A stretch of DNA of 64,000 nt from Octopus sinensis (lineage: Eukaryota): NCBI RefSeq assembly GCF_006345805.1, contig NC_043002.1, forward strand, positions 100,998,001 to 101,062,000, in the 5' to 3' direction. Made by a program: the position numbers and the translations under genes. Numbering within the stretch: the first letter of the stretch is position 1; the number at the start of each line of letters is the position of its first letter. The notes below the pieces were generated by a model. The model did not search any database and was not told the origin of the DNA. It was given only the letters and a program-made list of their open reading frames with translations. Shown one piece after another: positions 5,820-61,189 of this stretch.

Positions 5820-7872
5820 ATATTTAGTCCATCAGAAATCACAGCTGAGATGCCTAAAATATCTGGCAGTGTAGGGTATAGTCTAGTCACCCGTATAGTT
5901 AACCAGGTGATACATAAAGGAGTCATACCCAATGACTGGTGTAGCAGCATCATAGTCAACTGCTACAAAGGTAAAGATGATGTCTTAGATAGAAATAATT
6001 ACAGAGGTATCCAATTGATCGATCAGGTGATGGAATGGGACATAGAGAGGGTCATAGCCAAACTAATTAGGGAGAGAGTTAGTTTAGATGAGATGCAGTT
6101 TGGGTTTGTTCCAGGGAGAAGCACAACTACTGCTATATTTCTGGTAAGACAGCTACAGGAGAAATACCTAGTCAAAGATAAACCTCTGTACTTGGCTTTT
6201 GTTGATGTGGAGGAAGCCTTTGACAGGGTCCCCAGATCCCTTACCTCATGGTCAAGGTAGAAACTAGGGATAAATGAGTGGTTGATGAGAGCTGTACAAG
6301 CCATGTACAGGGATGCTGTCAGTAAGGTGAGCATTGGCAATGAGTACAGTGAAGAATTCATGGCATAAGTAGGGATTCACTAAGGAACAGTCCTCAGCGC
6401 TTGCTTGTTCATCATAGTCGTCAAGGCGATATCAGGAATTCAAGACAGGCTTTCCCTGGGAGCTTCTTTATGCTGATGACCTGCTCTAATAGCTGAATCA
6501 CTACCAGAACTAGAGAAGAAGTTTCAGGTGTGCAACCAAGGTCTAGAATGGAAGAGCCTTAGAGTTAACCTAGCTAAAAGCAAAGTCTTAGTAAGTATGG
6601 AGGCAGACAAGTCACAAATCCCTTCCGATAGATGGCCCTACTTGATCTGTGGAAGAGGCATAGGTGGAAAACTCCATAAGATGAACCCGGTGTAAGCTAT
6701 GGACACATAAGAAGTGCAACAATATCAGAATGTTAACCAGGACAATGTACAGAAAATGAATTCCATCACATACCGGGTGGGGGTGGGTGAACTAGAAGTA
6801 GTCGATAGCTTCCATTACCGAAGTGACCAAGCCAGTATTGGGGGTAGATGCTCTAAGAGCGTAACTCCTAAAATAAAATAGGCTGGGAAAAGTTCTGAGA
6901 GCTCCTACCTCTGCAAGTAATAAAGGGCCCTCTCCCTAAAAATGAAAGGCAGCCTGTACGATGTCTGTGTGAAACAGCCATGCTACACAGCAGTGAAACA
7001 TGGGCTGTTTCTGTTTGAGGACATGCGTAAGCTTGTAAGAAATGAAGCTAATATGCTTTGCTGGATGTGTAATGTCAGTGAACATGCACAACAGAATGTA
7101 AGCATCCTGAGCAAAAAGTTGGACATAAGAAGCATCAGATGTGGTGCACAAGAGAGGTGCTTGGATTGGTATGACCATGTGAATTTTATGGGTGAGGAGA
7201 GCTGTGTGAAGGAAGAAGTGTCACACTCTAACAGTGAAGGGAACTTGTGGAAGAGGTAGACCCGGAAAGTCATATGACGAGGTGGTGAAGCATGATCTTC
7301 AAATGTTGGACTTCACAGAGCAATGAGAAGCGATCGAGACCTTTGGAGATATGCCGTGCTTGATAAGACCCATGAAACCAAGTGAGATTTTAGTTGTGGT
7401 CGATGCTAGTGTCATGTAACTGGCCCTTTAAAAGCACCCTTCCATCAATGGGCGATATCTCGTGTGTATGAAGACCTGTCGAAGCAAGTGAAATCGTAGA
7501 CATGGGTGATGCCAGTACCGTCTGACTAGCACCCATGCCAGTCACACGTAAAAAGCACTGTTCGAGCATTGGGCCTCATGAAGGCGGTGACAGGTGACCA
7601 AGATCTTTGGTTATATATTGTGCTTGTGTAAACTTGTCAAGCTAAGTGAGACCATAGTCATGACCAATGTTGCTGTCAGATTATTGACACCCATACCAGT
7701 GGCACATAAAAAACACCCACTATACTGTCAGAATGGTTGGTGTTAGGAAGGGCATTCAGCTGTAGAAACGTTGCCAAATCAGATCAGAACTTGGTGCAGC
7801 CCTCTGGCTTACCACTTTTCAGTCAAACCGTCCAACCCATGCCAGGTGGGAAAGCAGGCGTTAAATGATGAT
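5820..7872 (+). mobile_element. RTE-clade LINE, 5'-truncated and disrupted
   Basis: RT motifs (NYRGIQL, QFGFVPG, LAFVD.E.AFDRVP, ELLYADD), stops and frameshifts, sub-repeated 3' UTR, ends GTTAAATGATGAT; homologous to 62196-64000. Confidence 0.9.
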
Positions 7873-13522: not shown

Positions 13523-13648
13523 CTCAATAACATTCGATACCAAATACGGCAAAGTTTTGTTCATTTTGATTTTCTCTTTGTTTTCTTTTATTTTGTCTTT
13601 CTGGGTTCGAAGTTCATGTTTGATTCTCTGATCATCTGTCCTCATGAT
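13523..13648 (-). CDS. PSMC3: 26S proteasome AAA-ATPase Rpt5/subunit 6A, internal exon (126 nt, phase 0/0)
   Basis: [42 protein letters not shown] matches the Rpt5 coiled coil and [13 protein letters not shown] motif; TTTTAG acceptor, GTAAGT donor. Confidence 0.9.
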
Positions 13649-14016
13649 CTAAAATGAATAAAGAAATAAAGAAATATATGCATTTTGAAATGTAACAAAC
13701 TGTAAAGAATTTCCATACCATTTCATTCTTGTTTGTTGGTAGTTTGATTTGGAAGAAACAGCAGTGGCCAGGATCTTTGTAGAATCTCCAAGAAGAATAA
13801 TTAGATCAACATGGTTAATGCTGTACTTGAATTGCTGCATGACAATAGTGTATTGGGGTTGTAGAGTGGTAAGATGGGTTCAGCAATACTGGTGAGTGCA
13901 CATGCCACATTGTGAGGAGGCTTCCAACCCATAAGACTGGCACTCATAGGCCGATATACAAGATGCAATTGAACTAGCTATCAAGTGTAGCAACAGTTCT
14001 CTTGCAAAATTTCTCA

Positions 14017-14180
14017 AGGGCACAGGAGTGGCTGTGTGGTAAGTAGCTTGCTAACCAGCCACATGGTTCCAGGTTCAGTCCCACTGCATGGCATCTTGGG
14101 CAAGTGTCTTTTGCTATAGCCCCGGGCCAACCAATGCCTTGTGAGTGGATTTGGTAGACGGAAACTGAAAGAAGCCCGTC

Positions 14181-14216
<36 letters not shown>

Positions 14217-14430
14217 TTATGTGTTTGTGTATCTGTGTTTGTCCCCCTAGCATTGCTTGACAACCGATGCTGGTGTGTTTACGTATCCGTCACTTAGCGG
14301 TTCGGCAAAAGGGACCGATAGAATAAGTACTGGGCTTACAAAGAATAAATCCCGGGGTCGATTTGCTCGACTAAAGGCGGTGCTCCAGCATGGCCGCAGT
14401 CAAATGACTGAAACAAGTAAAAGAAAAGAA
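14017..14430 (+). mobile_element. SINE family A, full length
   Basis: Colinear with 2494-2911. Confidence 0.85.
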
Positions 14431-15400
14431 AAGAAAGAAAAGGGTGAAAAGGCAACTGGTGGGAGACATACAAGAACGAGTCTCCAGTAGATCTGATATT
14501 AATGCAGTTCTACTCGTAGTCATTAAGGTGGAAAAGGAATTTAAGGTTTTGAAAAGGTGATTCTTAATGGATGTCTCCATTGTCTTTGAGAAGATGAGAG
14601 CAATGAGGTCAATAATTGGTCAAAGTAGGGGATTCTTCTCCTTGGAAACAGTACAAATTGTATTGTTTTACTAAAGATTGTGATTGATTCTTGTAGAGAG
14701 AGGGCTTGAGAAGTTTGCAAAGATAGATGCTAGTTCTGATGTGCATTGTTTGTATGTAATGGAAGGGACACTGTCAGGGCTGGTGGTCTTGTTGGTTTGA
14801 AGTAACAGGAGGCATTTCCATACAGGGCATGTATAAATCTGGTAGAGTGGAGAAAAGGACAGCTCTGGAAGAGATTTATCTGATGTGTACAGTGTGTAGT
14901 TGTATTCCAAATGGACAGCAAATGTGGAAGGAAGGAGGATTCTACAGACTTACCAAGGTCCTTTAAGCAAGGGATCTAAAGTACCAACCACATGGCTTGT
15001 GGGTTTGTGTATGGAGATATGTGTGTCAATGGTGAGTAAATGTTGTTCCCAGATTGTAAGGGTAGGCGGTTTTCTTTGAGCATTATAAAGAATGGTCTTT
15101 TTGAACTGCTGCAGTACAGTTATGAGTGAATTACTTGAAAGATTTGGGATTATGAGTTTTAGTTGTAGGAGTGATGTGGAAGAACATGTGGAAAAAAAGG
15201 TTTTTCTAAAATGGCTTTGTCAGAGAAAAAAGAGCAGTGTCTGTCTTGGGGTGAGATGTGGGAGTTAACTGCAGATGACAGAGTGGTAGTCTGTAATCAA
15301 GGGTTAAGTGGTAGTGTTAAATAAATCACTGAAGGAGAAGATGAACAGTCTGTCCAAAAAGGTTCTACAATTTCTGGATGCTGACACTGAAAGGTAATCA
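14430..15400 (-). mobile_element. Decayed CR1-like LINE remnant
   Basis: Minus-strand PDSVPSITYKQCTSELASIFANF resembles the GPD.IP..VLK.CA.EL RT N-terminal motif. Confidence 0.45.
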
Positions 15401-15625
15401 TAAAAACAGCAGAAGACTAGGGATGATATGAAAGTGATGAGGTCACAGAATGATCAAATCTCTTAAACAAGATGGCAGAGGATTAGAATAAGTGGTGATA
15501 TAGAGTACAGCTGATCAGTCAACTCATACCTGCAAGGAAAATGATGTCTTCCATATATAAAAACAAACACAGCAAACTTCTAAAGAATATTGCAAATTAT
15601 GCATTTCTAGTAGTAGCAATTCTAA

Positions 15626-16021
15626 TCTTTATATATAAAAGTAAGGTTGTGTGCTGTCTGTCTCCTACGATTTAGATTTCTAACTACTCCCACATTTTGT
15701 GGTGCAGTTTAACCAAAACCGGGTATCTTATAGTCGTGATTCATATCGAGCCCTTCTGGGCATTAGCGTACGTCTACGATGAGTCTACGATTTAAAAAAA
15801 ATTTACCATCAATTTTTCCCATTTTTAATGCATTTTTGGCATGTATAAGGGAAGTAACTCTCTAAAAATTTATCATTAGATCTCAGAACGTAAAAAGCTA
15901 CAGTAACCCCCCTCCCTTTGTGGTTAGCCATATTGAGATGGCTATTATACTTTACATCTCTAAAAATGCTTATATAGTTATTTCCCTTACAAACCCGAGC
16001 AACGCCGGGCGATACTGCTAG
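15626..16021 (+). mobile_element. Non-autonomous Helitron, copy 3
   Basis: A|TC...hairpin...CTAG|T. Confidence 0.85.
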
Positions 16022-16129
16022 TTGATTATGTAATTAGAATATTTCTTCAAACTGCAACGAATGTAAAACTATAAAGAAATAAGTAGATCAAGAGGGAACC
16101 TTAAATAATAATGTTACATATTTACTTAT

Positions 16130-16210
16130 GCTAACTTCATTATCAAGCAGTCTGGTTCGGCTAATTATTTCATCTGTTGACATATGTAACACTTCTTCAC
16201 CAAGCACTTC
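16130..16210 (-). CDS. PSMC3: Rpt5/subunit 6A, upstream exon (81 nt, or 75 nt if the GT at 16135 is used)
   Basis: [27 protein letters not shown] matches the conserved GEEVL.MST.EI..RTRLLD.E motif; TTTCCAG acceptor; donor at the conserved position reads ATAAGT. Confidence 0.88.
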
Positions 16211-18859
16211 CTGGAAAGCAATTACATTTCAATGAGCTAAGACTCTTGAATGAATATATATAAGTACGTATTTGTTGAGAACATGCTTAAACAAAAGAAT
16301 TAGAAACAAATAGTTTGATTTCTTTTTTTTTATTATTTGTCTATCATTTTTTTTCATTTAAAATATACAAATATAGTTATTGAATTCAATGAAAAAGAAA
16401 ATAATAGTTACAAACAAGTTCATCACCATCGTCATTTAACATCCGTTTTTTTATGCTGCAATGGTTTGGATGGTTTGATAGGAGCTGGTAACCTAGAGAG
16501 CTGTACTAGGCTCCATGTCTGTTTAGGCATGGCTTCTATGGCTGGATGCCCTTCCTAACACCAACCACTTTACAGAGTGTACTGAGTGCTTTTTACAAGG
16601 TACCAGCAAGATATGTATATATAAAAAAAAAACAGTAAAAAATGGACCCATAAGATTAAGTAAATGTCTAGTGAAGCTTCTAAGAGAAGACATGGCTTCC
16701 TTAGCAATCCTCCTCTTTTTTTCTGTGAGATTACACAATTTGATTACTGAATATCACTTGTAATTCTGTAAACATTAAATTTCTTGCCTTGATGTGCTTC
16801 AGAAATCATCATTAAATAAAGTATTGGCAGAATTTAGTGCCACACAAAATAGTTTTCTTCTTTTCTATGGTCTTAGAAAAGGAGTGTTAATGTTAGCTGT
16901 GAGGACAATCAATGTGTGTGTGGTGTGTCTGTGTGTCTTAGGTCAACTTTGTTTTTCATCCTTCTGGAGTTGATAAAATGCACTACTAACCCCTTCTTAC
17001 AAATTTCTGACCTTGTGCCTATGTAAAAAAAATCCATATCATTAGAAAGTGGTGTGACAAAATTCCACTACATATCCAAAGACCTAGTATTCAGTAACTA
17101 TGCTAATAATAAGTTTTATAGATTGTTACAAAAACATTTGATTTCAGAATAAAATGAGACATAACTAGCAACACAGAAGGGAGCGGGCATGGGGGTGGAG
17201 GGTGTAGAGCAGCTTCAGTTAACCTTATTTTGGGACTGGATTTTTTAATCTCTACAGGATTTGAACCTTGAACATAAGGTTATGTACCAAAATACTGCAA
17301 GGCAAGTAGTTTCAGGTTCAGTCCCACTGCATGGCACCTTCTGCAAGTGCCTTCTTCTATGGTCCTTGTAAGCAAAGCCTTTTATCTTTTTCTTGTTTCA
17401 GTCATTTGACTGCAGTTATGCTGGGGCATCACCTCGAAGGGTTTTAGTCAAAAGCCTAGTACTTACTCAGTTGGTCTGTTTTGCTGAACCGTTAAGTTAT
17501 GGGAACATAAACATACCAACACTGGTTGTCAATTGGTGGTTGGAGACAAACACAGATACAAAGAAACAAACATGAAAAAAGCTGAAAAAGTATGCCATGT
17601 GTGTGTACAAGAGAGAAGACTGCACTGGTGTGATCATGTGATGTGCAGTGGAGATGACAGTTGCATAACGAAGTGCCAGCAATTAAATGCAGAAAGAGCT
17701 GTGGAACGAAGAAGTGAAGTAGTCATCTCCTCTGTGTTGAGTCTCATGGGGTGGATGACAAAAGCACCAAGATGACTGGTGATTTGCTGTTCTTGAGAAC
17801 ACCTGTCCATTTCATATAATTTGTCTATGTCCCTGCACCCAGTCTGTCCCTGACATGCCTCTTCCCTACAACTCATTCTCCTAACACCACTCCTATTCAC
17901 CATAGTCTTTCAGGTTATAACAGAAAAGTTTGAGGTTGGCTGCCAATGGCAACTCTGCTTTGCTGGTGACCGAGTTCCTATAGCCGAAGTAGATTTCAAC
18001 ACCATCTAACATTCATTGTCTATGCTGGCATGGGTTGGACAGTTTAACCAGGGTTGGCAAGCTGGAACACTGCACCAGACTCCATTCTGATTTAGCATGG
18101 TTTCTAAGGCTGGATGCCCTTCCTAATGCCAACCACTCCAAGAGTGTAATGGGTGCTTTTATGTGCATCACATTGCCAAACCAGTGGTCTTCTCTCTTGC
18201 ACACTATATTTAATTCCTCTTATGCCAAACTTTTCTCTCAATACACTAGTACTTTGTCATTGCACATTTAACAGAGGATTGTAAACTGTTAAAAAGGCAA
18301 AGCAGATACACAACAGAAGAGATTACAGAGAATCAAATTGTCAGACCAGGTTAGGAAAGTTATTGAAAGAGTTAATATTACAAGATTGATTAGGAACAAG
18401 TCTAAATGAGATGTGATTGGGCTTTATACCAGGAACAGGTACAATTAATATCATCTTCCTAATGAGATTACTGCAAGAGAAGAGCTTAGTAGTAAGCCTG
18501 TATATGTAACGTTCATAGAGTTGGAGAAGAACTTTGGTAGTTTGGTCATCAGGTGGTTCTTAAGGAAATAAAGAGTAGAAGAATGGCTTGTGCAGCTGTA
18601 CATGCTATGTACAGAGGTGTTGTCAGCAAAGTGAGAGTTAACAAAGAGTACAACAACACATTAAGTGTGCAAGTTGGGACCCGTTAAAACTTGGTCGTCA
18701 GCCCTCTTCTGTTTATGGTCCTGTAAGTTATGAAGTGTGTTTTCAGGTTTAGTCCCACTACTTGACACCCTGAGAAAGTGTCACCTAGAATGTACATCAT
18801 AAAACTAAACCACTGCCTGCTGTCCTCTACTGGTCAGATATTAGAAATGTGGACCCACT

Positions 18860-24755: not shown

Positions 24756-27330
24756 GTGTGTACTATGTCGAATCCACGAGAAGCAAAAGTGAGGAAAATT
24801 TCTGATTTCTTCATTACTTCGTCACATCCAAAGAATCCAGGAGCATCGGATATTGTGGAGGTGCAACTCAACAAATCTTTATATATAAAAGTGAGGTTGT
24901 GTGGTGTCTGTCTCCTACGATTCAGATTCCTAACTACTCCCACATTTTACGGTGCAGTTTAACCAAAACCGGGTATCTTATAGACGTGATTCATATCGAA
25001 CCCTTCTGGGTATTAGTGCGCGTCTACGATGAGTCTACGATTTAAAAAAAAAATTACCATAATTTTTTTCCATTTTAATGCATTTTTTCGCTATTATATA
25101 AGGGAAGTAACTCTCTAAAAATGTCTACGATGAGTCAACGATTAAAAAAAAAATTACCATCATTTTTTTTCCATTTTTAATGCATTCTTTTGCTATTTTT
25201 TGGCTATAACTCTCTAAAAATGCTTATATAGTTATTTCCCTTACAAACCCGAGCAACGCCGGGCGATACTGCTAGTTATTGATAAAGCTCTTCCAGTAAA
25301 TCGCGATATCCCATCGAAATATTGCACATCAACTGAACAATTCGTGCTAAGTGAAACATTTGAATTTCCCAAGGATGCAAAAAAAACCGTTCATGTCGCT
25401 CAGATTGGTTTAAAGAGAACCCATGGCTTCATCATGATATTCAGTATGATGTTGTTATCTGCTGGTATTGTCTTGAAAGAGTTCGGGCTAACAGGATTCC
25501 ATCTCCCAAGGAAACTGCCTTTTTGACTTGTGTAAGAAACTGGGGCAAAATTACTGCAAAAATTGCTGCACATAGCCGTTCTGGTCCCCATATAAACGCT
25601 ATCCGCACTTTTCGGTTGGAGACAGGTATATATCTGACTCTGAATAAGCAGGTGATTCAGCAACAAGAAGTAACCCGGTAAGCTTTAAAAATTATTTTCA
25701 AAGTAGTTAGATTTTGTGGTAGACAAGGCCTAACATTACAAGGGCATGACCACGATATGGGAAACTTTGTAAATCGCGTAAGGGAACTTGCTGAAGAATG
25801 CAGTGCAGAAGTAAGTCAGTGGTTTAAGCGCCGGGACAATTTCCTCTCTGATACAATTCAAAATGAAGTTTTAGAGGCATATGCTCATAACATATTACAT
25901 GAGATCAAAATAAAAGTAGAAAATTCCAGGTTTATTGGCATTATATGTGATGGTACCACTGATTGCTCTGGCATAGAACAAGTATCAATCACTGTCCGGT
26001 ACGTTTCTGAAGACCTGAATGTCAATGAGGATTTTCTAGGTTTTTATAATCTCCCTGACTGCTCTTCAGAGACACTGACTAAGATTATTCTGGATGTTTT
26101 TTGTCGCCTAAACATTTCACTTGGCTCAAAGTTATGCTGTTTTTCATTTCATGGTGCAAGTACCATGAGTGGAAACATTTCAGGTGTACAAATGCGATTG
26201 GAAAAATTCGTTCCCAGGTACATATTTTGTACACTGTGGAAACCACTCTCTGGACCTTGTCCTCCAAGAAGTTAGTTCTAAGGTTACCTTTGTAGCTGAT
26301 GCACTGAACTTTGTTCATCAATGTGCCATTCTTGTAAAAGAGTCACCAAAAAGAAAAGCACAATGGGCAAATCTTTGTGGTGAGAATGTCATCATGTTGC
26401 AAGCAGTGTGTCCAACTCGGTGGTACATTAGAGCAACAGCACTGAACGAGCAGAAAACAATTATAAGAATATTCAGAATTTTTTGCTTGACCTTCTTAAT
26501 GACTCGTCGTTAAGAGCAACAACAAAGGCTACTGTTAAAGGGCTGCTAAAACAATCTGGCAAAGCTTCCACTTTGTTCGGCATTAAAATCGCTGGGGATA
26601 TATTTGGAGTATGTGAGCCAGTGGTAATTAGCTTACAGCGTCCAGGCACGACAGCCGGTGATTGCTTGAACTTGATTGAAAAGTTGAAAAACTCTCTTTC
26701 AAAAATGAGAAGTGAGAAGGTTTTTGAAAAATATTTCGATGAAGTATCCCTCTTCTGACTTAGTGAAAATGCCCAACAATTTCGCGATCCAAAAACATAC
26801 CACTGCGCTTTAGGCAGACAACAACTACTGAAGAAGTTGCTCTTTCTGTCACCGATGACTGGCGTCGGCAATTTTTTTCTACAGTGGATGTCATCAAAAA
26901 TGAATTGTCTCACCGGTTTCAGCAAGAGGGAATGCGTGTATGCTCTGAGCGAGAGGAGTTGCTGTTGTCAGCAGTCAATTGTGGAGTATTTAATTTTGAA
27001 AATACACATCTACCTGCTTCTTGTGATTTGCTCTTACTGTAATTTCAAATCAAACTTCTTGCTGGCCTATGGACGGAAAGGGAAACTTTGCTTAAATCAT
27101 TTATTGACATAATTGAGAAATGGAGAGCGTCCGATGCTATTTTTCGTTCTAGTGTGCCACAAGTGTTGGTGTTAATGCAGCTTGTCCTGTCTTCACCTAT
27201 ATCTGTTGTATCAAGTGAAAGAACATTCAGCGCATTTCGCCGTTTGAAGACCTGGCTTCGTACCACAATGACACAGCACCGTCTTACACATTGTGCCATA
27301 ATGCATGTACCTAAAAAAAATATGCGATGA
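24756..27330 (+). pseudogene. hAT transposase (ZMYM1/DUF4371-like), frameshifted
   Basis: TTF-type Zn finger (RSDWFKENPWLH...VICWYC), RQGLTLQGHD, IICDGTTD, HCGNHSLDL, CPTRW and dimerisation motif SSERTFSAFRRLKTWLRTTMTQHRL, spread over several frames. Confidence 0.88.
24876..25275 (+). mobile_element. Non-autonomous Helitron, copy 4, nested in the hAT
   Basis: A|TC...CTAG|T, no TSD. Confidence 0.85.
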
Positions 27331-42808: not shown

Positions 42809-44676
42809 GTAAAGTAAGTATATATTTTAAGCTATCTAATTTAGTTTATTCCCCTCCACGTTACTGTTGAGTTGCCCTCGTAACACACGTCCTCTTCTAT
42901 TCCACTTCTAACTCCAGTTAGCTTTCATTCAGATATAAAAATACAATCGTAAATATTTTCAGTTACATGTTCCAACTGAAAATATGTGTCTTTTTTTGTC
43001 GGGCTACAGATTGATAAAATATGGTCGGTAGAAGGTTAGCTTCTGGTACCAATATCCAAAAGTCAAGTTTCTTCCATGTGCTTTTCGATCCTGAAGTTTC
43101 TGGATCGTGGTGTCAAGTGTATATAGACATATAGTACGTTAAACTTAATAGCACCAAATGGATATAATCTGTTAAGTTTTCTGGTATCGTAACATTCAAA
43201 TAGCGAGACGATATTGACTGAGACTTATCCAGGCATAGATAGCTTATCTCCCATCCTTTCAAGAAATTTGTTCAGATACCATTGGAAGTAATGGGATCGA
43301 TTTCCTCTTTGAATTGCTTTGCAATCATGTCAAATACTGCAGAGACATTTGGAGAAAATGTAATTTGGTTGTCCTGTAAGAGGGTCAGCTGAAGCTTTCA
43401 AAGGCCGACCAAAATACTCTCATGGAATGTGACCAAAGAGTTTTAATTTTTAACATATTCCGGTCAACACTTTTCTTCCATTGGTGTTGCAATTATTCTA
43501 AAGAATAATATGTATCACAGAGTATTCACAGCGTACAGTGAATAGCATGAGAAAAAAGATGTCATGACTTGGTCGTTGAATAAATGACCATTTCTGAATA
43601 TTTAAGTTTTGTATCTATTACCTTTTAGTTGGGATATGAGGCTGTAATCTGTCCTAGTAGAAATGTCTAGTGGCGCAGAGCATTTCGGGCCAGAGCCAAC
43701 CATAAGTATGACTACAAACATAAGATATTTTGTGAACATAATAAATAACAGAACTCTCACCTCTTAGACACATTAGCAGAGACAATAAAGTTCAATCTAA
43801 GCAAGGGACTTATAATTAAGAAAAATCTACGTTGATATTCCTAATATAAGGGTGCTAGGGGATCAAAGAAAATCATCATCATTAAGCCGGGAACAACAAT
43901 TTTTGACCTTACACAACTTTATTGATATAATTAGGTAGATAAGTTATATTTTTATTAAATATAACTCGTCCAGAAACTAGCTGATACCATCACGTATAAA
44001 CTACATGTGTGTGTATGTATGTTTGTCTTTGTGTTTGTCCCGCTCCACTGCTTGACAACCTGTGTTGGTGTGTTTACGTGCCCTGTAACTTAGTGGTTCA
44101 ATATATAGTGCCTATATGTTTGTCATGTGTTTGTATTTGTCTAAATTGAGCAGGAAAAAAACCCCGAAGTATATTTTAATTCATCAATGAGATTAACCTG
44201 CTTGATAAATCTATGCAGCTGGAAATTGAATGTAGCGCAGTCATAACTTTATTGTTTAATGGCATTTAATTGCAGTAAAATTTACAGTTTTATAATTAAC
44301 GACGCTAACCAAATTTATTTGGTAATAATTGTTCTTGCTATATATATATATATATATAAATAAATGTTCTATATTTTTTCTACTTTTATAGAAATATAAA
44401 CAGATCGATCTAAATCTGAAACCATTGTCGAAACCAAAACGAAAATCAGTTTGCTATAAACTGATAAAGAAGAAGAATTATACCGGATTAAGATATTAAC
44501 ATTATCTCATATAATCTCCACTGAAACAGGTGTATTAATTAACGTAATAAACTAATTTCCGAATGAACACCTCTATTTCTTTCTGTTTTGTTTTTCTTTT
44601 GTGATCTTTATAACAGTTAGAAACCAATAGAAGGAAATTTTGATTAAAAAGCAGGTGTATGTATAACAGGTGTATG

Positions 44677-44708
<32 letters not shown>

Positions 44709-44752
44709 TGTATGTATGTATGTATGTATGTGTATGTATGTATGTATGTATG

Positions 44753-44785
<33 letters not shown>

Positions 44786-44794
44786 TTCTCTCTC

Positions 44795-44848
<54 letters not shown>

Positions 44849-45486
44849 ACATTGATGAACAACAATTGATTTGCATCAATTATTATTTATTAATAATTTA
44901 CAAAGGACTGAATCCCGTCTAACATCTGTTTCTACTGCCAATGTTCTTTGGACTGACCATGATGATGCTAACAGAATATTAATAATAGTTGGTATTAAAA
45001 CCGATTTGAATCATGGAGCTTCATCAGAGGTAATTAATTAGAGGTAATGTTAGATGGCATGCAGTCTTTTGTAAATTATTAATAAATATTAATTGATGCA
45101 AAATAATTGTTGTTCATCAATGGTTTCTCCATTTTCTGTTTTCTTTAACTTTTGATTCCTGATAAACTCCTGTTTATCCTTGTGTTATGAGCATAACGTC
45201 TTAACCCTTGTTTAGGTATAGGTAATATACCGGTAGTATTTTGGATAGTTTTATCCCTTAGACGGTTATTTTAACCTCTAACTCAACTAACCTTACACAC
45301 ACACATATATATAAGCATATTACTCTACCTTCGATATTCGTGTATTATTTTTTTTCCACCTTGTATCCCATTTATGTGGTTACTCTGGTATACACATGTA
45401 TATGTGTGTAATGGCGTATACATATCAGTATATATATATATATATATATATCAAATAAAATTAAAAATACGAACGCAAAGGATGTC

Positions 45487-45533
45487 GCGGTACACGTGTT
45501 TCAAGCTTTATAAACGACTTCTTCTTACATCAG
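45487..45533 (-). ncRNA. Degenerate hammerhead-like motif
   Basis: AAG...CUU-GAAA-CACGUG-UA-CCGC; palindromic stem III intact, CUGANGA core disrupted. Confidence 0.3.
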
Positions 45534-46349
45534 TGTATAATAGATATAAAAGATGGTTTAAAGCTCTCTTCAGCTGCATGCATTGTTATTCCAAAGAGTT
45601 AAATCACACTACGAAAAGTACATGTAGTATTATCCATAATAATAGGTATATCATATCTCCCTGAGAAAGTGTATTTGCAAAATTTCACAACCAAATAGGC
45701 GTGTAGGGTATCATTGGATTTCGAAAACCTGTCCATACTGCATCACCAGTCAACATATAGTGAATGTTAAATAGATTTGAATGGGTTCATTCCCCTTGTA
45801 AGGAAATAGAAATAAAGAGAAGGAAAGAAGAAAAATAGGGAGAACATGGAGAGGAAAGAAAATAGATAGAAAGAATAGAGAGAAAAGACAGAGGGGAAAT
45901 AGAGATAAAGAAAGAAAAGGGAGAAAAATGAAGGTTTTAAGAAAATAGAGAGAGAAAACTTTAAAGATAGAAACAAGGTAAGGGGACAATGTAAGTAAAG
46001 GATAAGGGTAATAAAGTTAGAAAAAAGATAATAATGTTAGAACCGCATATACACTCGCAAAAACATCACAACTTCTAAGTGTCTATCTCGTTTTGGGGGA
46101 TATAACAGTTTTAATTAATTAATTAATAATTTAAATGCAAAGATAAAACATAAACGATAAAAAATTAGAAAAATAAAATAAAATAAAAATAACAATAAAA
46201 TCAGAAAGATAAGAAAAGTACAAAGCAAAGATTATAATCGCAATAATACTGGTGATCATAATATAGTTACAATATTACAATATAATATTGATTGGAAAAT
46301 ATATATTGGTTGGAGAGATTTCAATATTATCTACTATGTAAAATATACT

Positions 46350-46660
<311 letters not shown>

Positions 46661-46738
46661 TATGTACGCGACTGTGAGGATTTGTATCCCAACGTAGAAT
46701 TTAAGATGTAACACATGTCCTTGAAGTAGTAATTGTGC

Positions 46739-46816
46739 GCGGCTGAAGAAGGCCATAGACACACATTATGCATTGTTATAAATCCGTCTAATAAAGGCCC
46801 GAACCATATGTACCGC
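46739..46816 (+). ncRNA. Hammerhead-like motif with mutated GAAA
   Basis: GCGG-CUGAAGAA-GGCC...GGCC-CGAAC-CAUAUG-UA-CCGC; stems I and II pair. Confidence 0.45.
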
Positions 46817-47607
46817 TGAATCCTTGGCATCATGTTTTTATTTTGATTAATATATATGTATATATATTTATAAATGAGGGTGAAAAATTGATATTAATTT
46901 AATAATACCATTCATTTAACACCGAGTGGCTTAGCACAAAAAACTACGGAGAAAATACAAATTTATACATAAATTATTATGTGGATAACTCTAGTGCTAA
47001 AAATAGCCCCGATAGTATAGCCACAGAAAAAAGATGTTTCCAACTAGAAGTAACATACATTTAACGGAAGGAAAGTGAAATACAACGAATATATATATAT
47101 ATATATATATATGTATAGCGGTAGAAACAGTATATATACCCAAATGTAGTATTTATCTAAAAGTGGACGTGATAGAACAGAGAATCCTGCGTTCTTTACT
47201 CTGAGAGAACCCTTCATATGGAAATGTGAGGCATAACAATACTGTCGCTATTAATTGCTGTTTAATTAGCCCACTGACTCCTTACGACACCAATGATGTT
47301 ACTAGAACTAATCAATATGAACTTGCCCGAGACTGTCCTTGGTTTTATACTATATACTTCCTGTTTAAAGCGATAGAAGTCTTAAAACCTTCCTCCAACA
47401 TTTTATGTTTACTTATGTCTTTGACTCTTGCTTCATAATGACAAAATAATTTAATTAAACTTTTCGTTATCTTCAAAGTTCATTGAAATAAATGCAGCGC
47501 ATTTCAACGGAAATATGATGAAAAATAAATCATAAATAGGAACAAATCCATAATTTTGAATTAGTTATTGGGAAAAAGAGTCAATATGTATTATTATTAT
47601 AATTATA

Positions 47608-47657
<50 letters not shown>

Positions 47658-47814
47658 CATCATCATCATCATCATTATTGAGTGAGAGAGCAGTGCATGC
47701 CATCAAAGTGACACTGGAGTAAAATATACGAAGCCCAGTATACCCATCATGACTACCCGTCTGATAAGGGTACACTAGGCACATGCATCACAACCATATG
47801 TGCGCGACATGGTG

Positions 47815-47879
<65 letters not shown>

Positions 47880-47882
47880 TAC

Positions 47883-47918
<36 letters not shown>

Positions 47919-49271
47919 GTTCCAAAGATAAAGGTGTGACTTTGTAGTCTCTCAGATTCGTGTGTGTTGCTTGGATTATCAAATACGTACACATCGATAA
48001 GTCTTTAAAGACAGAACTCATCATTATTCCCTATTCAGGAAGAATGCATAATATGCATGGAGTCATTGACCTTTGTGAGAACATAAACACCTCTAGATTC
48101 CCGTCCACCAGTGCAATCTGACAAACCAGTTCTGTATTTTTAAATTTTTTTCCCTATACGTCACAGATGTTTGTCCTTTTGAAATTGTAATATATTGTTC
48201 AAATTATTATTTATGTTTTTTTTTAATATTTACTTAAAACGCAGTACGAAAATCAACCAACATTTACGAACATCAAAAAGACATTTATTATATAATAGAG
48301 GATGGAGAAAAGAGAAAATGCTTGAAATCAAACATTTTTCTTTTATCATTTCGTATTTGTGTAATGTGAATTATGATCGATTATCGATTATCGATGGTAC
48401 TTGACCTCGATATTACAACAGAATTGACATAAATAGAAGCTTTGAAGTAATCAATAGTTCTCATTGATTTTCTACTATAAATTATTGATCTATATGATCT
48501 GAAATAATATTTTTTAAAGTTTGATGTACCATAAGTTGGGTAGAATCCACTAACTAATAAAATATTAATATTGACTCACACCTAAAAGATGAAATAATAA
48601 AACTAGACTAAATGTTACTCGTGTTTAGGTGTAAGATTTGCAACACATAGAGAAGGCCACAAATTTATAGGGTGGAGTATAGTCAATAAAAATAAAACCT
48701 ACATTTAATTGGTTTAACTAGGATGCACAAAAAACAAAGTCATCAATACCGGCGGGATTCAAAGAAACGTAGAGACGTCGGTAAATACTGTAAATTGAGT
48801 GATTCAATATAATAAAAACTTGTTGACGGAAAATGTGAAAAACCCGTCATATATATAATGGTGTACAAACAATTTAACAATTTAACTTATTTATACACAA
48901 AAGAGGTGACCTTACATGCTGGAAAAGGCAGTTAAAGCCCAAACCACGAATAAGGACAATTTCAAAGGGAATGGAAATTAAAATGAATTTTGTAGGTACC
49001 CTTAGATTCGAATCGCTGCATGAATGTGCAAATAGCACTGAAAATATACGTGTTATATAATCATATATTATAAGTTTCAAATACACCGCTCAACCGCAGT
49101 AACATTCGGTAATATATATATATATATATATATACGGAGATGTACTTGCATAGCGAGTGACTTGATCTGAGATCGTGTGCTGGAACGAAAACAATTGCAG
49201 CGTGGAAGGTGTTTATAAGCCATTTAAGAAACACACAAAACCGTTAGATTCACTTCAACATTTAAATTTAA

Positions 49272-49322
49272 TTTGTCAAAATATTTTCGTCGCTTTCAGA
49301 CCGCGACCTGTTCACTGACAAA
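49272..49322 (-). ncRNA. Hammerhead motif, G3:C8 core variant (left arm)
   Basis: UUUGUCA-GUGAACA-G-GUCGC(GGUCUGAAA)GCGAC-GAAA-AUAU-UU-UGACAAA. Confidence 0.6.
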
Positions 49323-49341
49323 ACTTCTTGCAGCAAGAGTT

Positions 49342-49392
49342 TTTGTCAGTGAACAGGTCGCGGTCTAAAAGCGGCGAAAATATTTTGACAAA
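49342..49392 (+). ncRNA. Hammerhead motif, G3:C8 core variant (right arm)
   Basis: Same fold; stem II GUCGC/GCGGC with one G.U pair. Confidence 0.6.
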
Positions 49393-49503
49393 TTAAATTT
49401 AAATGTTGAAGTGAATCTAACGGTTTTGTGTGTTTCTTAAATGGCTTATAAACACCTTCCACGTAGCAATTGGTTATATACATATACACACACACACATA
49501 TAT

Positions 49504-49537
<34 letters not shown>

Positions 49538-49628
49538 ATTTTAGTATTTTTCTACCTTGTCTTATTTTCCTTATACATACATACAAACATACATATATAC
49601 ATATGCATACACATACATATACATACAT

Positions 49629-49702
<74 letters not shown>

Positions 49703-50116
49703 GAAATGAGGTACTCAGAATTCGGATGGTTTTATATTTACAGATATTTATTTGTATATTACATGTTTTTATACATCATATAACATATAACATATATCAT
49801 ATATTAGCGCTTTCGTCCATTATGGTGGATTTTTCAAATTGCGTCCATTCTGGTGAATTTTTCAAATTGAACTATATATGAAGGGGAATTTTCCTTGTGT
49901 TGAATGTCTTGTACCCTGTTTTTTCGTTGCTTAAAATGATGTCCGCTTCCATGATTCTGTTTTTACGTTTTCGTTTCTCATTGTGTTCGACGTTTTTTTG
50001 GTGTTTTGTACCTAAATATGCATGTATACATACATATAGATGTAGGTATGTACATATATGTATGTATATATGCCTATGTTTTATTTATATTTTGTTATAT
50101 ATATATATATATATAT

Positions 50117-50404
50117 ATCAACAATCAAGGAACGGCCATAATAGGCCATTCACCCACTAGAAATAACAGCCAAAGCTTCAACCGCAAATAAGATTAATTC
50201 CGTAAACAGGAGAAAATTAAAAACATTTACCCTGTAATTTCTTGTACGATGCACCGTTGAAACGGTGCATCGTACAAGAAATTACAGGGTAAATGTTTTT
50301 TAAATTTTCTCCTGTTTACGGAATTAATCTTTATTTGCGGTTGAAGCTTTGGCTGTTATTTCTAGTGGTGAATGGCCTATTATGGCCGTTCCTTGATTGT
50401 TGAT
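50117..50404. repeat. Near-perfect palindrome (about 143-bp arms, 2-nt spacer)
   Basis: ...GTACGATGCACCGTT GA AACGGTGCATCGTAC...; abuts a (TA)n tract. Confidence 0.95.
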
Positions 50405-50536
50405 GTTGAACTTAAAAATGGTCTATGACTATTTAATTTTTTCCCACTAGGCCGCTGGTGGCAAAAAGAATTCTACAAAATTTTTTTGCCACCCTATATT
50501 GATTAATTATATATATATATATATATATATATTATA

Positions 50537-52179
50537 CAGTTGCGACCAAAATGTTCAGAACGGCATTGTTTTCGTCAGAAAAGTAGATATAATTTTTTAT
50601 TAAAGTTGTTTTATATTCTATAATTTTCACAGATAATAGATACGATATAATTTGTTATTGTCTGAGATTTCGGTGTAATTTGAGAGGATAATAAAGACGT
50701 TGTGGATGATTTAGTGATTTACTGCAAAACCCATGGCAGCCAAAATGATCAGAACGGTTGCTTTTACTCCATGTTTTAGTATATTTAACGGTCGAACTCT
50801 AAAATTTTGAATTTTTTTACGTGACAGTTCGTTTACTAAACATTAGTAAGAATATCTGCAGTGTACTTTGTTAATATAGTGTCACTTACTCCGTTACCAA
50901 TTCGTCAGCAGATTATTAAGCTTCGAAAGAAGGATAATTTAAGTATTAGGTCTATTGCAAAGATTGTTAACAAGCCTAAAAGTGTTGTTCACGGTATTCT
51001 TAAGGTCTACGATGATTGTGGTTCGTGTTAAGCAAGAAAGTCTACAGGTAGGCCAAGAAAAACGACCAAGAGAGAAGATCGTGCTATGGTAAAGCTGGTT
51101 AAAAAGGACAGATTTAAAACTGCTGCTGCTGTTTTTCGGGAAATGAGCATTGTACTGAAGAAAACTTTATCTCGAAAAACTGTCTCGTCCTTTAGTTGAA
51201 CATGACCTACAAGTAAGAGCACCTGCAGTGAAGCCACTGATCAGCTCCAAGAATAAAAAGTGCCGTCTTACCATTGCAACCGAACATGTGTTGTGGTCTC
51301 AAAAAAATGGCAAACGGTGCATTTCAGTAATGAATCTAAGTCTATGTTATTTGGCTCAGATGGGAAAAGGTACGTTCGTCGAAAAGCAGGTGAAAAATTG
51401 TCACCTAAATGCCTTAAGACTAGTGTTAAATTCAGTGGAGGAAGTGTCATGGTTTGGGGGATGATATCTGGAGATGTTGTGGGCCCTTGTCTGCGATTAC
51501 ATAGAAAGGTAAATGCAGGAGTTTATAAACAACTTGTAAAAGATCATGTCTTGCCTGTGCTGAGAAATTCAACTAAGCGACCACCCATATTCATGCAGGA
51601 CAATGCCCCATGTCACAAGGCTAAGGTGGTCATGAACTTCCTCAAGGCTGAAAAGGTTATTGTTATGGATTAGCCTGCTCAAAGCCCAGATCTCAATCCT
51701 ATTGAAAATGTGTTGAATATTCTAGGAGAATGTTTGAAAGCCAGAAATCCTAAAATAACCGAGTAATTATGGAATGCCCTTCAGGAAGAATGGAATAAGA
51801 TCACCCAGCAAGAAATTGAAAATTTAATTTCCCCATGTAGTCGAAAATGTCAAACTTTGATTAAAGCTAAAGGGCTTCACACTAAATATGAAATAATTCC
51901 AGCATTCTCTGTCACTTTTTGATTATTTTGTTATTTTTTCAACCGTTCTGATCATTTTGGCCACCATGGGCTTTGCAGTAAATCACTATATCATCCATAA
52001 CTTTTGTATTCTCCACTCACATTACACCAAAATCTCAGACAATACCAAGTAATATCGTATTTATCGTGTGTGAAAATTATAAAATACAAAACAACTTTAT
52101 ACAAATATAAAGTTATATTATACCTACTTATACCTACTTTTCTGACAAAAACAATGCCGTTCTGAACATTTAGTCGCAA

Positions 52180-52182
<3 letters not shown>
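50537..52182 (+). mobile_element. Full-length defective Tc1 element with long TIRs
   Basis: TA|CAGTTGCGACCAAAATGTTCAGAACGGCATTG...CAACTG|TA; TGRPRKT, FMQDNAPCH and PAQSPDLNPIEN motifs; in-frame stops; first Asp reads N (FSNES). Confidence 0.92.
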
Positions 52183-52254
<72 letters not shown>

Positions 52255-52370
52255 TGGTAAAAACGGTAAGATAACAAAAGAAAGAAAGAGACCTCAATAT
52301 TATGTAAATAGAGGAAATTTATCTGTAAAATAATGTGACAATTGTTCGGTAGCTAAGATATATATATGTT

Positions 52371-52417
<47 letters not shown>

Positions 52418-52485
52418 ACTGGTCATAATGCGCTTTTCATTGTTCTAGCCTTCAAATGACGCCACGCCGCTGCCTAAGCAAACAG

Positions 52486-52557
<72 letters not shown>

Positions 52558-52598
52558 TATATACATATATATATACATATATATATATACATATATGT

Positions 52599-52654
<56 letters not shown>

Positions 52655-52677
52655 GTACAGATATACATATATATATA

Positions 52678-52733
<56 letters not shown>

Positions 52734-52770
52734 CATATATATATATTTATACATACATATATACATAATA
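52183..52770. repeat. (TA)n arrays interrupted by short repeat fragments
   Basis: Directly visible; 52255-52360 matches 58577-58670. Confidence 0.85.
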
Positions 52771-53219
52771 ATTATATAAATATATATGATAATTTAGTGA
52801 ATACTTGGGATGAGCGCAAAATAAAATGCAAACACAAGTTACTTTACTTATATAATAAATTTCTTGATAAATAATGAATATTTATTAGCCTTAATTAGCT
52901 CCTTATTTGTTGATTTATGTAATAGTATTCTAAATATAGCAGGTGATGTGTAGTACTTATTATATAGTTTATTTTAGTTATTTAGGTTCTGTTTTTAATT
53001 ATTGTTAGATTATATATAGTTGTTTATTTTATTACTAAATATTTTATTACTAAATATATTTTTTAATAAATATTTAATGGTTTATTGAATATAGAGTTTG
53101 GTAAGTTACAATTTTATTTATCTTATAATAAAGTTAAGTTTATATATTTTGTTATATTTCTGTATAATTTTGTTAAATTATAATTTGTTATATTATCTAT
53201 TGTATGTATTCTCTTTATA

Positions 53220-53985
53220 TTTGAAATAGATTTATTTAGTTGTTTATTTGATCTATTTTATTTAATATAGAAGTATAGATTAGTAAGATTAAATATTTAG
53301 ATTAAACTTAATGTTTACCTCATTTTTTGTATTGTAGTATGAATATAGACATTTATATACGTATTTACTATATGATATATGTGTTTGTGTGTGTATGTAT
53401 ATATGTGTATAGGTTGATGTGCGTGTATATATATGTATATGTATATACATTTATTTATGTGTGTGTGGGTGTGTGTATATAGGTGTATGTGTATATATTG
53501 AGTATTGTATGTATGTACATGTATGTATGTGTGTGTATGTGTGTATGTGTGTGTATATATGTGTGTATATATGTATATGTATGTATATATATATGTGTGT
53601 GTGTATTTGAAATAGATTTATTTAGTTGTTTATTTGATCTATTTTATTTAATATAGAAGTATAGATTAGTAAGATTAAATATTTAGATTAAACTTAATGT
53701 TTACCTCATTTTTTGTATTGTAGTATGAATATAGACATTTATATACGTATTTACTATATGATATATGTGTTGTGTGTGTATGTATATATGTGTATAGGTT
53801 GATGTGCGTGTATATATATGTATATGTATATACATTTATTTATGTGTGTGTGGGTGTGTGTATATAGGTGTATGTGTATATATTGAGTATGTATGTATGT
53901 ACATGTATGTATGTGTGTGTATGTGTGTATGTGTGTGTATATATGTGTGTATATATGTATATGTATGTATATATATGTGTGTGTG

Positions 53986-53990
<5 letters not shown>
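53220..53990. repeat. Tandem duplication of an about 365-bp unit
   Basis: TTTGAAATAGATTTATTTAGTTG... starts at about 53220 and again at about 53586, nearly identical. Confidence 0.9.
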
Positions 53991-54056
<66 letters not shown>

Positions 54057-54894
54057 TTTATATATATATGTATACGTATGTATAGTTATACTGCAAATTT
54101 TTGAGATTTTGGTTATGATCACTAATTTTAGCTTATAATTATAAGAGCATTGGGAAAGACTTTATAGTACGATGAGGGGGTACTATAAAAAATTTTTTTT
54201 ATATATTTATTAATCATATAAGATTTTTAGAATATATTTAGTAATGAGTGGTTTTTATCATTTAAATTATTTAATTTATTTTGTATTAAGTATTATTTAT
54301 CATAGTTATTTTATTAATAAATCTTATAGTATAGAGTGATTTTATTCTTTATCTGTGACTTCATTCTAATTACACTGATAAAACATTAATGTTCCCATTC
54401 ACAATCTTCATTGATAAAGCGTATTTGTTCCTCACGCTTAATGAATTCTTCAACAATTTATTCTTTTTTTGCTAATAACGTAATTCCACGAGTATTCTTA
54501 TAAACGCTGTAAAGACGTTTTCCGATTCAAAATTTTAGTTCATTACAAAACCTTGCTAAGATAAGTATTTATTTATATTTAAGATCTTTAAATTGTAAAT
54601 TTTAATATTTTATAAGTCTTTGATATAATATTTTCCTTATGTAAATATCGTTGTTTATGTAATGATCTAATTATCGTAATTTTCTATATTATTAGATATT
54701 AAATTTAAGTTTATTCGTAAGATATTACTTAGTAATAGATTTGTTGTTTGATAGCAAGTATACGAGGTGTCTAAACTTAGGCTTTTGTATATACATGTAT
54801 TAATAGTATTAATTGCAGTTTTAAATTTCTTATAATTAAAATTAGATAAACTCTTATAAACTTAGATATGTTTTGACTAATGATTGGTCCAGGC

Positions 54895-55112
54895 CATACT
54901 CTCTTTACTCTTTACTCTTTTACTTGTTTCAGTCATTTGACTGAGGCCATGCTGGAGCACCGCCTTTAATCGAGCAACTCGACCCCGGGACTTATTCTTT
55001 GTAAGCCCAGTACTTATTCTATCGGTCTCTTTTGCCGAACCGCTAAGTGACGGGGACATAAACACACCAGCATCGGTTGTCAAGCAATGCTAGTGGGGAC
55101 AAACACAAACAT

Positions 55113-55185
<73 letters not shown>

Positions 55186-55346
55186 CGACGGGCTTCTTTC
55201 AATTTCCGTCTACCAAATCCACTCACAAGGCTTTGGTCGGCCCGAGGCTATAGTAGGAGACAGTTGCCCAAGGTGCCACGCAGTGGGACTGAACCCGGAA
55301 CTATGTGGTTGATAAACAAGCTACTTACCACACAGCCACTCCTGCG
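54895..55346 (-). mobile_element. SINE family A, full length
   Basis: Reverse complement of 2494-2911; inserted into the GGTCCAGGCCA|TGTCTAACTTAATAGC LINE tail. Confidence 0.85.
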
Positions 55347-55937
55347 CCATGTCTAACTTAATAGCATAACTTAGTTACTGTCTTTTTAAATAGATATTCG
55401 CTAGTTATTCCCATTGATAATTATATTTATAGTATTTATAGTATTTATTCGATACTATATAACTACGAATTGATTATTTCTATAAGTATTTTAAAATAAG
55501 ATTTCTGAAAGTTCGTTTAAGTTTGTTTGTTTGTATTTTTGAAATTAGCTATTTCATCTTTAAATATGAAAAATTAATTTATTAGGTCTTTATTATATGT
55601 GCATATATATTTATTTATAGAGATTATATTAGATCTTAATTGTAATATTTATATATATTTATATATTTTCATTGATAATTTATATATAATAGTCATTTTA
55701 AAAAATATATTTATGTAATTAGATATAGACTATTACCGATATTAAATTATTGGTGGGTTTCTTACCTTATAAATTAAAATTAATATTTAACATTATAATC
55801 GATTTTGATATAATCATAATTGTTAAGTTTTAAGTTCTAGTTTGATAATAGAGTTTATTATAAGTGAAATTATTATATTATTTATATCTTTAAAATATTG
55901 TTTAAATATTTCTGATTATTTTTAAAATATTCAAATT

Positions 55938-56030
55938 AACCTGAAGATTGACTGTAACCATAACTCGAATTATTAATTGAATTTAAATTATTGTTATTCG
56001 AATTGGTACAGCCATGAAACGATCGTAGTG
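55938..56030 (+). ncRNA. Hammerhead motif with extended stem II
   Basis: AAC-CUGAAGA-UUGACUGUAACCA...UGGUACAGCCAU-GAAA-CGAUCG-UA-GUG; core intact, palindromic stem III, short stem I. Confidence 0.6.
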
Positions 56031-60460: not shown

Positions 60461-61189
60461 AATAAATTTACTCCTTGGCATTTCAAGACATCTTTATGTA
60501 ATTTTGGTAAATGTATCTTGTTTCACGCGCGGAGTTGCTTGTTTACTGGGGCTAAGCCATTCCTTACGCTACTTCATATTGATGTACAAGCACCATTTTT
60601 CGTCGCCAGTAACGATTCCGTAAAGAAATCGTTGCTTGTGTTCAGAAGTTGAGCGGTGTGGAGCAAGCAAACCAGCAGAGATTATGGCTCGTTGATTTTT
60701 GTTGTTGTCACTTAAAGCATGCGGAACCCATGCCCCATACTTCTGAACCTTTCCCATCGAGCGAAGATGCTTCTCCATATCAGTGTGGGAGCATTCCACT
60801 CCTCTGCCACTTCCCTTGTCGTTTGACGAGAATTTTCGTGCAAAAGTTGGTTTAATCGCTTTTCATCGAACTCAACTGGACAGCCAGAATGAAGTGCGTT
60901 TTTGAGGTCAAAATGTCCATTATTGAACTTGGCATACCAATCACGAACGCTTCTTTCAGCTATGGTACCCTCTCCATAAACAGCACAAATGTCGCGATCA
61001 GCTTTTGTGGTCTTAGAACCTTGATTAAAATCACAAAGAAGATGTCGAAAATGGTCGTTTTTCTTAACTTGACATTCCATTTTAATAATCTGAAAATAAT
61101 CAAAAATTAACTAAAATTAACTAGAAAAAAAATAGATTCTAAAATTTAAAAACCAAATTTTAGAAAACGGCAGGAACTTAGTTGCCAAC

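Follow-up and report, generated by a model that had tools for sequence, protein, structure and literature searches.

Two exons of PSMC3 in a 64-kb genomic window flank an intron whose ancestral GT donor reads AT

The window, by which we mean the whole 64-kb stretch of DNA that was analyzed, carries two coding exons of PSMC3, the gene of the proteasome subunit Rpt5, on its minus strand (Table 1). We searched it by tblastn with human Rpt5 and later with the Rpt5 of Argonauta hians, and both queries matched two coding blocks. These are the exons that encode the N-terminal coiled coil of Rpt5, and they are collinear with those of the orthologues, which identifies the locus as PSMC3/Rpt5. Over exons 2 and 3, the window matches Argonauta Rpt5 at 65 of 69 residues, with a nucleotide identity of 85.5%. 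Exon 2 together with nine bases of the following intron is 88.7% identical to the Argonauta sequence (blastn).

Exon 2 opens after ...tgctttccag at 16210, an acceptor whose position matches that of the Argonauta acceptor ...ttttttgcag, and closes with ...GAT AAT GAA GTT AGC at 16130. The bases that directly follow it on the minus strand are ATAAGTAAATATGTAACA, which makes the A at 16129 the first base (+1) of intron 2. This intron ends with ...ttattcattttag (ttttag) before exon 3, whose first codons, ATC ATG AGG, start at 13648 in phase 0. Phase 0 is the only open phase at the exon 3 acceptor; the other two meet stops within six codons. Exon 3 ends at 13523 and is followed by a canonical donor (GAG/GTAAGT, 13522-13521; the slash marks the splice junction here and below). 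Apart from the altered donor, both exons are intact, free of stops and frameshifts, and each of the three remaining splice sites is good.

Table 1. Positions in the window of the PSMC3 exons, the splice signals and the predicted RNA pairings around the altered donor.
Feature	Position	Strand	Description
Intron 1, 3' end	16211..16230	-	gaaatgtaattgctttccag; AG acceptor intact; direct reading
PSMC3/Rpt5 exon 2	16130..16210	-	81 nt, 27 codons, phase 0 at both ends; tblastn
Ancestral 5' splice site of intron 2	16124..16129	-	Now ATAAGT; A is the +1 base (16129)
Intron 2	13649..16129	-	2,481 nt; normal pyrimidine tract and AG
PSMC3 exon 3	13523..13648	-	126 nt; tblastn, blastn, direct reading
Substitute GT, GAA/GTTAGC	First intron base 16135 (16134..16135)	-	3.0 bits; 2 aa shorter (Val-Ser lost); best-scoring
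Substitute GT, TAA/GTAAAT	First intron base 16125 (16124..16125)	-	1.9 bits; 4 nt into the intron; frameshift
Substitute GT, TAT/GTAACA	First intron base 16117 (16116..16117)	-	0.5 bits; in frame, +4 aa (Ile-Ser-Lys-Tyr)
Substitute GT, AAG/GTTCCC	First intron base 16099	-	0.7 bits; in frame, +10 aa
10-bp inverted repeat, intron arm	16112..16121	.	TGTTACATAT (RNA AUAUGUAACA); shares bases with the local hairpin and competes with it
10-bp inverted repeat, exon arm	16182..16191	.	ATATGTAACA (RNA UGUUACAUAU); includes the His codon CAU
Predicted local hairpin	16104..16144	-	16 bp, two interruptions, 6-nt loop; AU-rich

The initial annotation had stated that intron 2 begins with ATAAGT after ...GAA GTT AGC and ends in AG, and that this phase-0 junction is a conserved Rpt5 site at which the +1 base changed from G to A. 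Direct reading confirmed the first statement, coordinates included, and the orthologous sequences agree with the second. The closest Rpt5 proteins reached were those of Argonauta hians and of a decapodiform cluster that includes Sepia (Acanthosepion) pharaonis, all of which read ...LLDNEVS/ up to the junction. The genomic DNA of Argonauta hians reads GAC AAT GAA GTT AGC/GTAAGTAAACC at this point, with the donor GTAAGT, and its intron 2 acceptor reads ...tttacttcag/ATCATGAGG. In Sepia pharaonis, the genomic sequence is GAA GTC AGT/GTAAGTTATC, again with GTAAGT as the donor. Six decapodiform mRNA contigs, taken from sequencing-run assemblies, are spliced at the junction (NEVS/IMRTDD) and read ...GAAGTCAG[CT]/AT[CA]ATGAG... 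across it.

Because Argonauta and Sepia have a G at the same site, and because the decapodiform mRNAs are spliced there, the change from G to A at +1 is lineage-specific. It is the sole mismatch between the window and Argonauta in the first nine bases of the intron. Judged from the assembled sequence, position 16129 has undergone a genuine G-to-A transition, and PSMC3 intron 2 has thereby lost its ancestral GT donor. Scored with an approximate donor matrix, the ancestral site reaches 5.5 bits with G and -5.3 bits with A. Relative to the Argonauta sequence AGC/GTA, the change turns a CpG into a CpA. The CpG observed/expected ratio of the window is 0.65, which suggests germline methylation.

Intron 2 measures 2,481 nt in the window; its Argonauta counterpart has 2,726 nt and that of Sepia 5,238 nt. 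In several non-cephalopod animals, gene calls made on genomic contigs read ...EIKIMKSE... uninterrupted, with the equivalents of exons 2 and 3 forming one exon. By these sequence comparisons, the intron at NEVS/IM is a coleoid feature (Argonauta and Sepia) and is not universal in animals. The +1 substitution also creates an ATG on the opposite strand, and with it a 35-aa antisense ORF (16128-16235, plus strand) that is almost certainly meaningless.

We polarized the substitutions in the two exons with Sepia as the outgroup. Of the 12 changes in the window lineage, 3 are replacements and 9 are silent, whereas all 13 in the Argonauta lineage are silent; the excess of replacements in the window lineage is not significant (one-sided Fisher p = 0.096). 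With a dN/dS of ~0.1 for the window lineage and a branch that does not exceed that of Argonauta in length (12 vs 13), the copy was probably under constraint for most of its history. The three replacements fall at otherwise well-conserved Rpt5 positions. At the first, R>H (CGT>CAT, with a lineage-specific G>A at 16185), His occurs in none of 105 aligned Rpt5 sequences. At the second, Q>R (Arg codon CGA, 13603-13605), Arg occurs in none of 217 aligned sequences, and at the third, V>M (Met codon ATG, 13564-13566), Met occurs in 2 of 263 Rpt5 sequences. The R>H and V>M replacements are both G>A changes, which A-to-I editing could reverse.

The window does not hold a complete locus, that is, about 12 exons in order on one strand, and the rest could lie outside it. 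Exon 1 was not found in the 47,790 nt (47.8 kb) upstream within the window, nor were exons 4-12 in the 13,522 nt (13.5 kb) downstream within it. The searches for these exons comprised tblastn (E up to 50), blastn, blastn-short, tblastx, PAM30 short-peptide searches and regular expressions. A 14-nt match at ~55.98 kb was rejected as a missing exon because it consists of AT-rich low-complexity sequence. For comparison, the whole PSMC3 gene spans 20.2 kb in Argonauta (intron 1 ~4.0 kb, intron 3 ~2.8 kb) and 40.6 kb in Sepia (intron 1 14.5 kb, intron 3 1.0 kb). Intron 2 of the window is not expanded (2.5 kb), and the window has no N gaps.

Outside exons 2 and 3, the window is filled with transposon remains, and the flanks also contain AT-rich simple sequence. 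The remains include two adjacent reverse-transcriptase ORFs at 62346-63755 (+), one with a sub-threshold PHD-finger match (Pfam). Others lie at 5850-6260 (+), 60712-61080 (-) and 25757-26275 (+) and comprise another reverse-transcriptase fragment, a Mos1-type HTH_48 domain and a DUF4371 domain. A synteny search by tblastx with the 10-kb flanks of Argonauta PSMC3 matched transposons only, and Argonauta PSMC3 has no annotated neighbours within 10 kb. Strand compositional skew, as a sign of transcription, was noisy and dominated by the transposons. A self-similarity map of the window was uninformative as to duplication boundaries. Among the animal proteins searched, including those of NCBI and UniRef, no Rpt5 of the genus Octopus was found, and the matches were to Argonauta and decapodiform proteins. 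An exact look-up of five ORFs of the window returned none on record, and the 3' end of exon 2 was not found in a scan of JGI metagenomes.

The copy with A at 16129 is most likely not the template for the Rpt5 protein of this animal. Splicing of a U2-type intron that starts with A and ends with G stalls after the first catalytic step, so a transcript of this copy would stall, leave out exon 2 or resort to one of the weak GT sites nearby. Our leading explanation, which we hold tentatively and a little short of evenly balanced belief, is that the window contains a stranded, unprocessed and non-functional fragment of PSMC3 (exon 2, intron 2 and exon 3) duplicated from the complete gene. A piece with these three elements would have been duplicated away from the complete PSMC3 and, free of selection, would have gained the donor lesion and a few replacement changes. 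A complete copy of PSMC3 with the GT would then be present elsewhere in the genome, and the fragment would give no correctly spliced mRNA.

The locus has what is expected of a pseudogene fragment, namely partial gene content, a retained intron and a disabling lesion, and no substitute GT scores well. Economy also argues for this explanation. A real gene calls for two very long flanking introns plus an independent rare lesion, whereas a fragment calls for one uncommon event, after which the lesion is unremarkable. With two exons of ~12 in the window, a dead fragment or a faulty allele is likelier than a splice site rebuilt by editing. If the locus is a fragment, the dN/dS of ~0.1 and the equal branches imply that it is young. 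Several points count against a fragment, among them the youth that it would require and the lack of significance in the excess of replacements. Octopod introns are long and filled with transposons, and a real gene of >64 kb is conceivable, if unlikely. Apart from the altered donor, exons 2 and 3 and their splice sites are in good order. Lastly, a modestly unusual predicted hairpin, described below, pairs the +1 A, and a neutral fragment does not predict such pairing.

Unprocessed pseudogene fragments and null alleles with a +1 G>A donor change offer the closest parallels, being alike in partial exons, a retained intron, a single splice lesion and an origin by CpG transition (relative to Argonauta). 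The window differs from known unprocessed fragments in that its coding sequence is still clean and that its parent copy is so far putative. The probabilities that we attach to this and the following explanations are rough and reflect our own estimates of how intron lengths are distributed and how frequent pseudogenes are, not measurements from this genome, and what they leave over falls to other causes.

We consider it unlikely, although less so than the explanations that follow, that the window contains the real single-copy PSMC3, with unusually long introns 1 and 3, and that its functional state is not the A, which would be an error of base calling or polishing or else a heterozygous loss-of-function allele caught in the haploid assembly. 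As the CpG of the Argonauta sequence indicates, the site is mutation-prone, in a window whose CpG ratio is reduced, and all else about exons 2 and 3 looks functional. However, this explanation needs two independent rarities, namely flanking introns of great length and damage to an essential donor. A base error is further disfavored because substitution errors are rare in gap-free long-read assemblies.

The remaining explanations turn on what could happen at the RNA level. The initial annotation had noted that a 10-bp inverted repeat brackets the site and could seed double-stranded RNA. The repeat is real and its arms, 60 nt apart, match perfectly. As an editing duplex, however, we rejected it, because the +1 A is left unpaired in the 60-nt loop and because repeats of this type are common in the window. 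We counted 78 comparable inverted repeats, compared with 8.6 in block shuffles, and repeats of this kind occur in 11.6% of the 200-nt bins (~1 in 9), which makes this one ordinary in the window. An AT-rich stretch at 44000-56000 (G+C 0.23-0.32), with long simple repeats of the TA/CA type, is the source of most of the 11,292 raw 10-mer inverted-repeat pairs.

Folding predicts a local hairpin in which the last 15 bases of exon 2 pair with intron positions +9 to +26 and the +1 A pairs with U16118 (dG = -8.5 kcal/mol). The predicted probability that the +1 A is paired is 0.99 in contexts of +-40 and 60 nt and 0.54-0.90 in larger contexts. Argonauta lacks the pairing (P = 0.10), and Sepia has it in part (0.54). 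When intron positions +7 to +41 were shuffled (n = 1,000), 1.3% of the shuffles paired the site equally well and 6.9% were equally stable (p ~0.01-0.07). The 181-nt region overall has no excess of structure relative to shuffles (z = -0.16), and a scan against Rfam found no family. With this borderline significance, the predicted hairpin is suggestive at best as support for editing.

The predicted hairpin recalls the R/G-site hairpin of GluA2 (GRIA2), where the end of an exon likewise pairs with the start of the next intron and places an A near the 5' splice site in a duplex. In GluA2, the hairpin is a longer, conserved one and directs editing to a codon 2 nt upstream of the donor, not to the donor, whereas the predicted PSMC3 hairpin is a borderline 16-bp, AU-rich structure. 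The two derived A's at 16129 (donor +1) and 16185 (His codon) can each pair with U16118, in mutually exclusive helices (the local hairpin and the 10-bp repeat), and in each helix the G>A change turns a G-U wobble into an A-U pair.

In a real gene with a fixed A, A-to-I editing could restore the donor, as the initial annotation had suggested. ADAR would deaminate the +1 A, the resulting IU would be read as GU, and the AGC^ATC junction would be used, making the substitution a 'harm-permitted' G-to-A change. We regard this as very improbable. The locus does carry an A at +1 in the genome in place of the ancestral G, as an edited donor presupposes, and editing would restore that G exactly. The predicted hairpin, which is absent in Argonauta and whose pairing only 1.3% of shuffles match, offers the +1 A a partner. 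The two further lineage-specific G>A changes, in the His (CAU) and Met (AUG) codons nearby, would be reverted too, and RNA editing may bring back the original residues at both codons.

Several points weigh on the other side. The hairpin is short, AU-rich and borderline, in a region that is unstructured overall, and the C-A-U neighbours of the +1 A are not a context that ADAR favors. The locus resembles an isolated two-exon piece, and the problem of the long introns applies here as well. This would have to be the animal's sole PSMC3, with a constitutive editing-dependent 5' splice site and with every cell dependent on ADAR for the splicing of an essential proteasome subunit, a combination to which we give little credence. 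On the sequence, editing appears to be the least economical reading.

Published work bears on both sides of this question. A harm-permitting model, in which G-to-A changes become fixed while masked by editing, has been proposed for coleoids (PMC6881472). As an essential housekeeping gene, PSMC3 would have to be edited almost completely in all tissues, whereas the high editing activity of coleoids is so far reported from neural tissue alone (PMC6881472). According to a survey in octopus, editing very rarely changes splice sites (PMC9699675). We did not find PRS6A or PSMC3 in the supplements of the coleoid editing studies that we searched. In human, a few AT-AG introns show A>G at +1: three, in C14orf37, NUP210 and CRYZL1, have such editing and others do not (PMC4176328). 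Together with the self-editing of ADARB1 (an AA acceptor turned into AI; PMC4176328), these are human splice sites made canonical by editing with which the PSMC3 donor can be compared. They are alike in having a genomic A where the splice dinucleotide needs a G, with inosine read as G. They differ in being alternative, used at a low level and seen as A>G mismatches in RNA, whereas the PSMC3 site, known from DNA, would be constitutive in an essential gene.

Splicing could also have shifted, in a real gene with a fixed A, to an in-frame GT, either at 16135, with the loss of Val-Ser, or at 16117, with the gain of Ile-Ser-Lys-Tyr. The initial annotation had listed the GT at 16135 (2 aa shorter) and the GT at 16125 (frameshift) as alternatives, both correctly by our direct reading. 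The in-frame sites at 16117 and 16099 are additional to these. From the GT at 16125, the shifted frame meets a stop five codons into exon 3. The sites at 16135 and 16117 are both in phase 0 with the single open phase of exon 3, and 16135 is the best GT that remains (3.0 bits, compared with 5.5 for the ancestral site). Both are nevertheless weak donors, and every GT alternative scores below the ancestral site with G. The GT at 16135 is the plain ancestral Val codon, present also in Argonauta and Sepia, with no sign of strengthening. The NEVS/IM junction is identical in Argonauta and in all the decapodiform sequences seen, and the N-terminal coiled coil would have its heptad register shifted whether 2 aa were lost or 4 aa gained. 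We rate a shifted donor as very improbable.

Least probable among the explanations that we graded, and a very slight chance in our estimate, is that the gene is real and has a true AT-AG intron that is removed without editing. Positions +2 to +7 still fit the U1 consensus. However, classical mutagenesis established that a G>A change at +1, combined with a G at the 3' end, blocks the second catalytic step; U12 motifs are missing, and the long introns are again a problem. There are human AT-AG junctions without evidence of editing, and the AT donor of ACTR10 in primates is a recent derivative of GT (PMC4176328). ACTR10 resembles the PSMC3 copy in this recent descent from an ancestral GT, in its conserved intron position and in its normal AG (PMC4176328). 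It differs in that its splicing is documented by transcripts, whereas the PSMC3 copy is known from genomic sequence.

Introns of the AT-AC classes, U2- or U12-type, share the AT start with PSMC3 intron 2, and ATAAGT resembles the rare U2-type AT-AC donor, but the conserved AG end and the lack of both ATATCC and TCCTTRAY set this intron apart. A U12-type AT-AC intron is excluded because the donor, ATAAGTAA, is not ATATCC and the branch motif TCCTTRAY occurs nowhere in the whole 2,481 nt of the intron. A U2-type AT-AC intron is excluded by the conserved AG end (ttttag) and by the two AC dinucleotides checked near the exon 3 boundary, both of which run into stops; one lies upstream of the AG, the other in the first codons of exon 3.

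If the editing explanation were true, an essential housekeeping gene would for the first time be seen to rely on a constitutive donor that is present in RNA and not in DNA. The harm-permitting model of coleoid editing, so far applied to codons, would then take in splice signals as well, and ADAR would have to be substantially active beyond the nervous system. If the ordinary explanation is right, the locus is one more decayed piece of a gene, or one more faulty allele. For annotators, it is a warning that two exons may lie in a dead context even when their protein homology is perfect.
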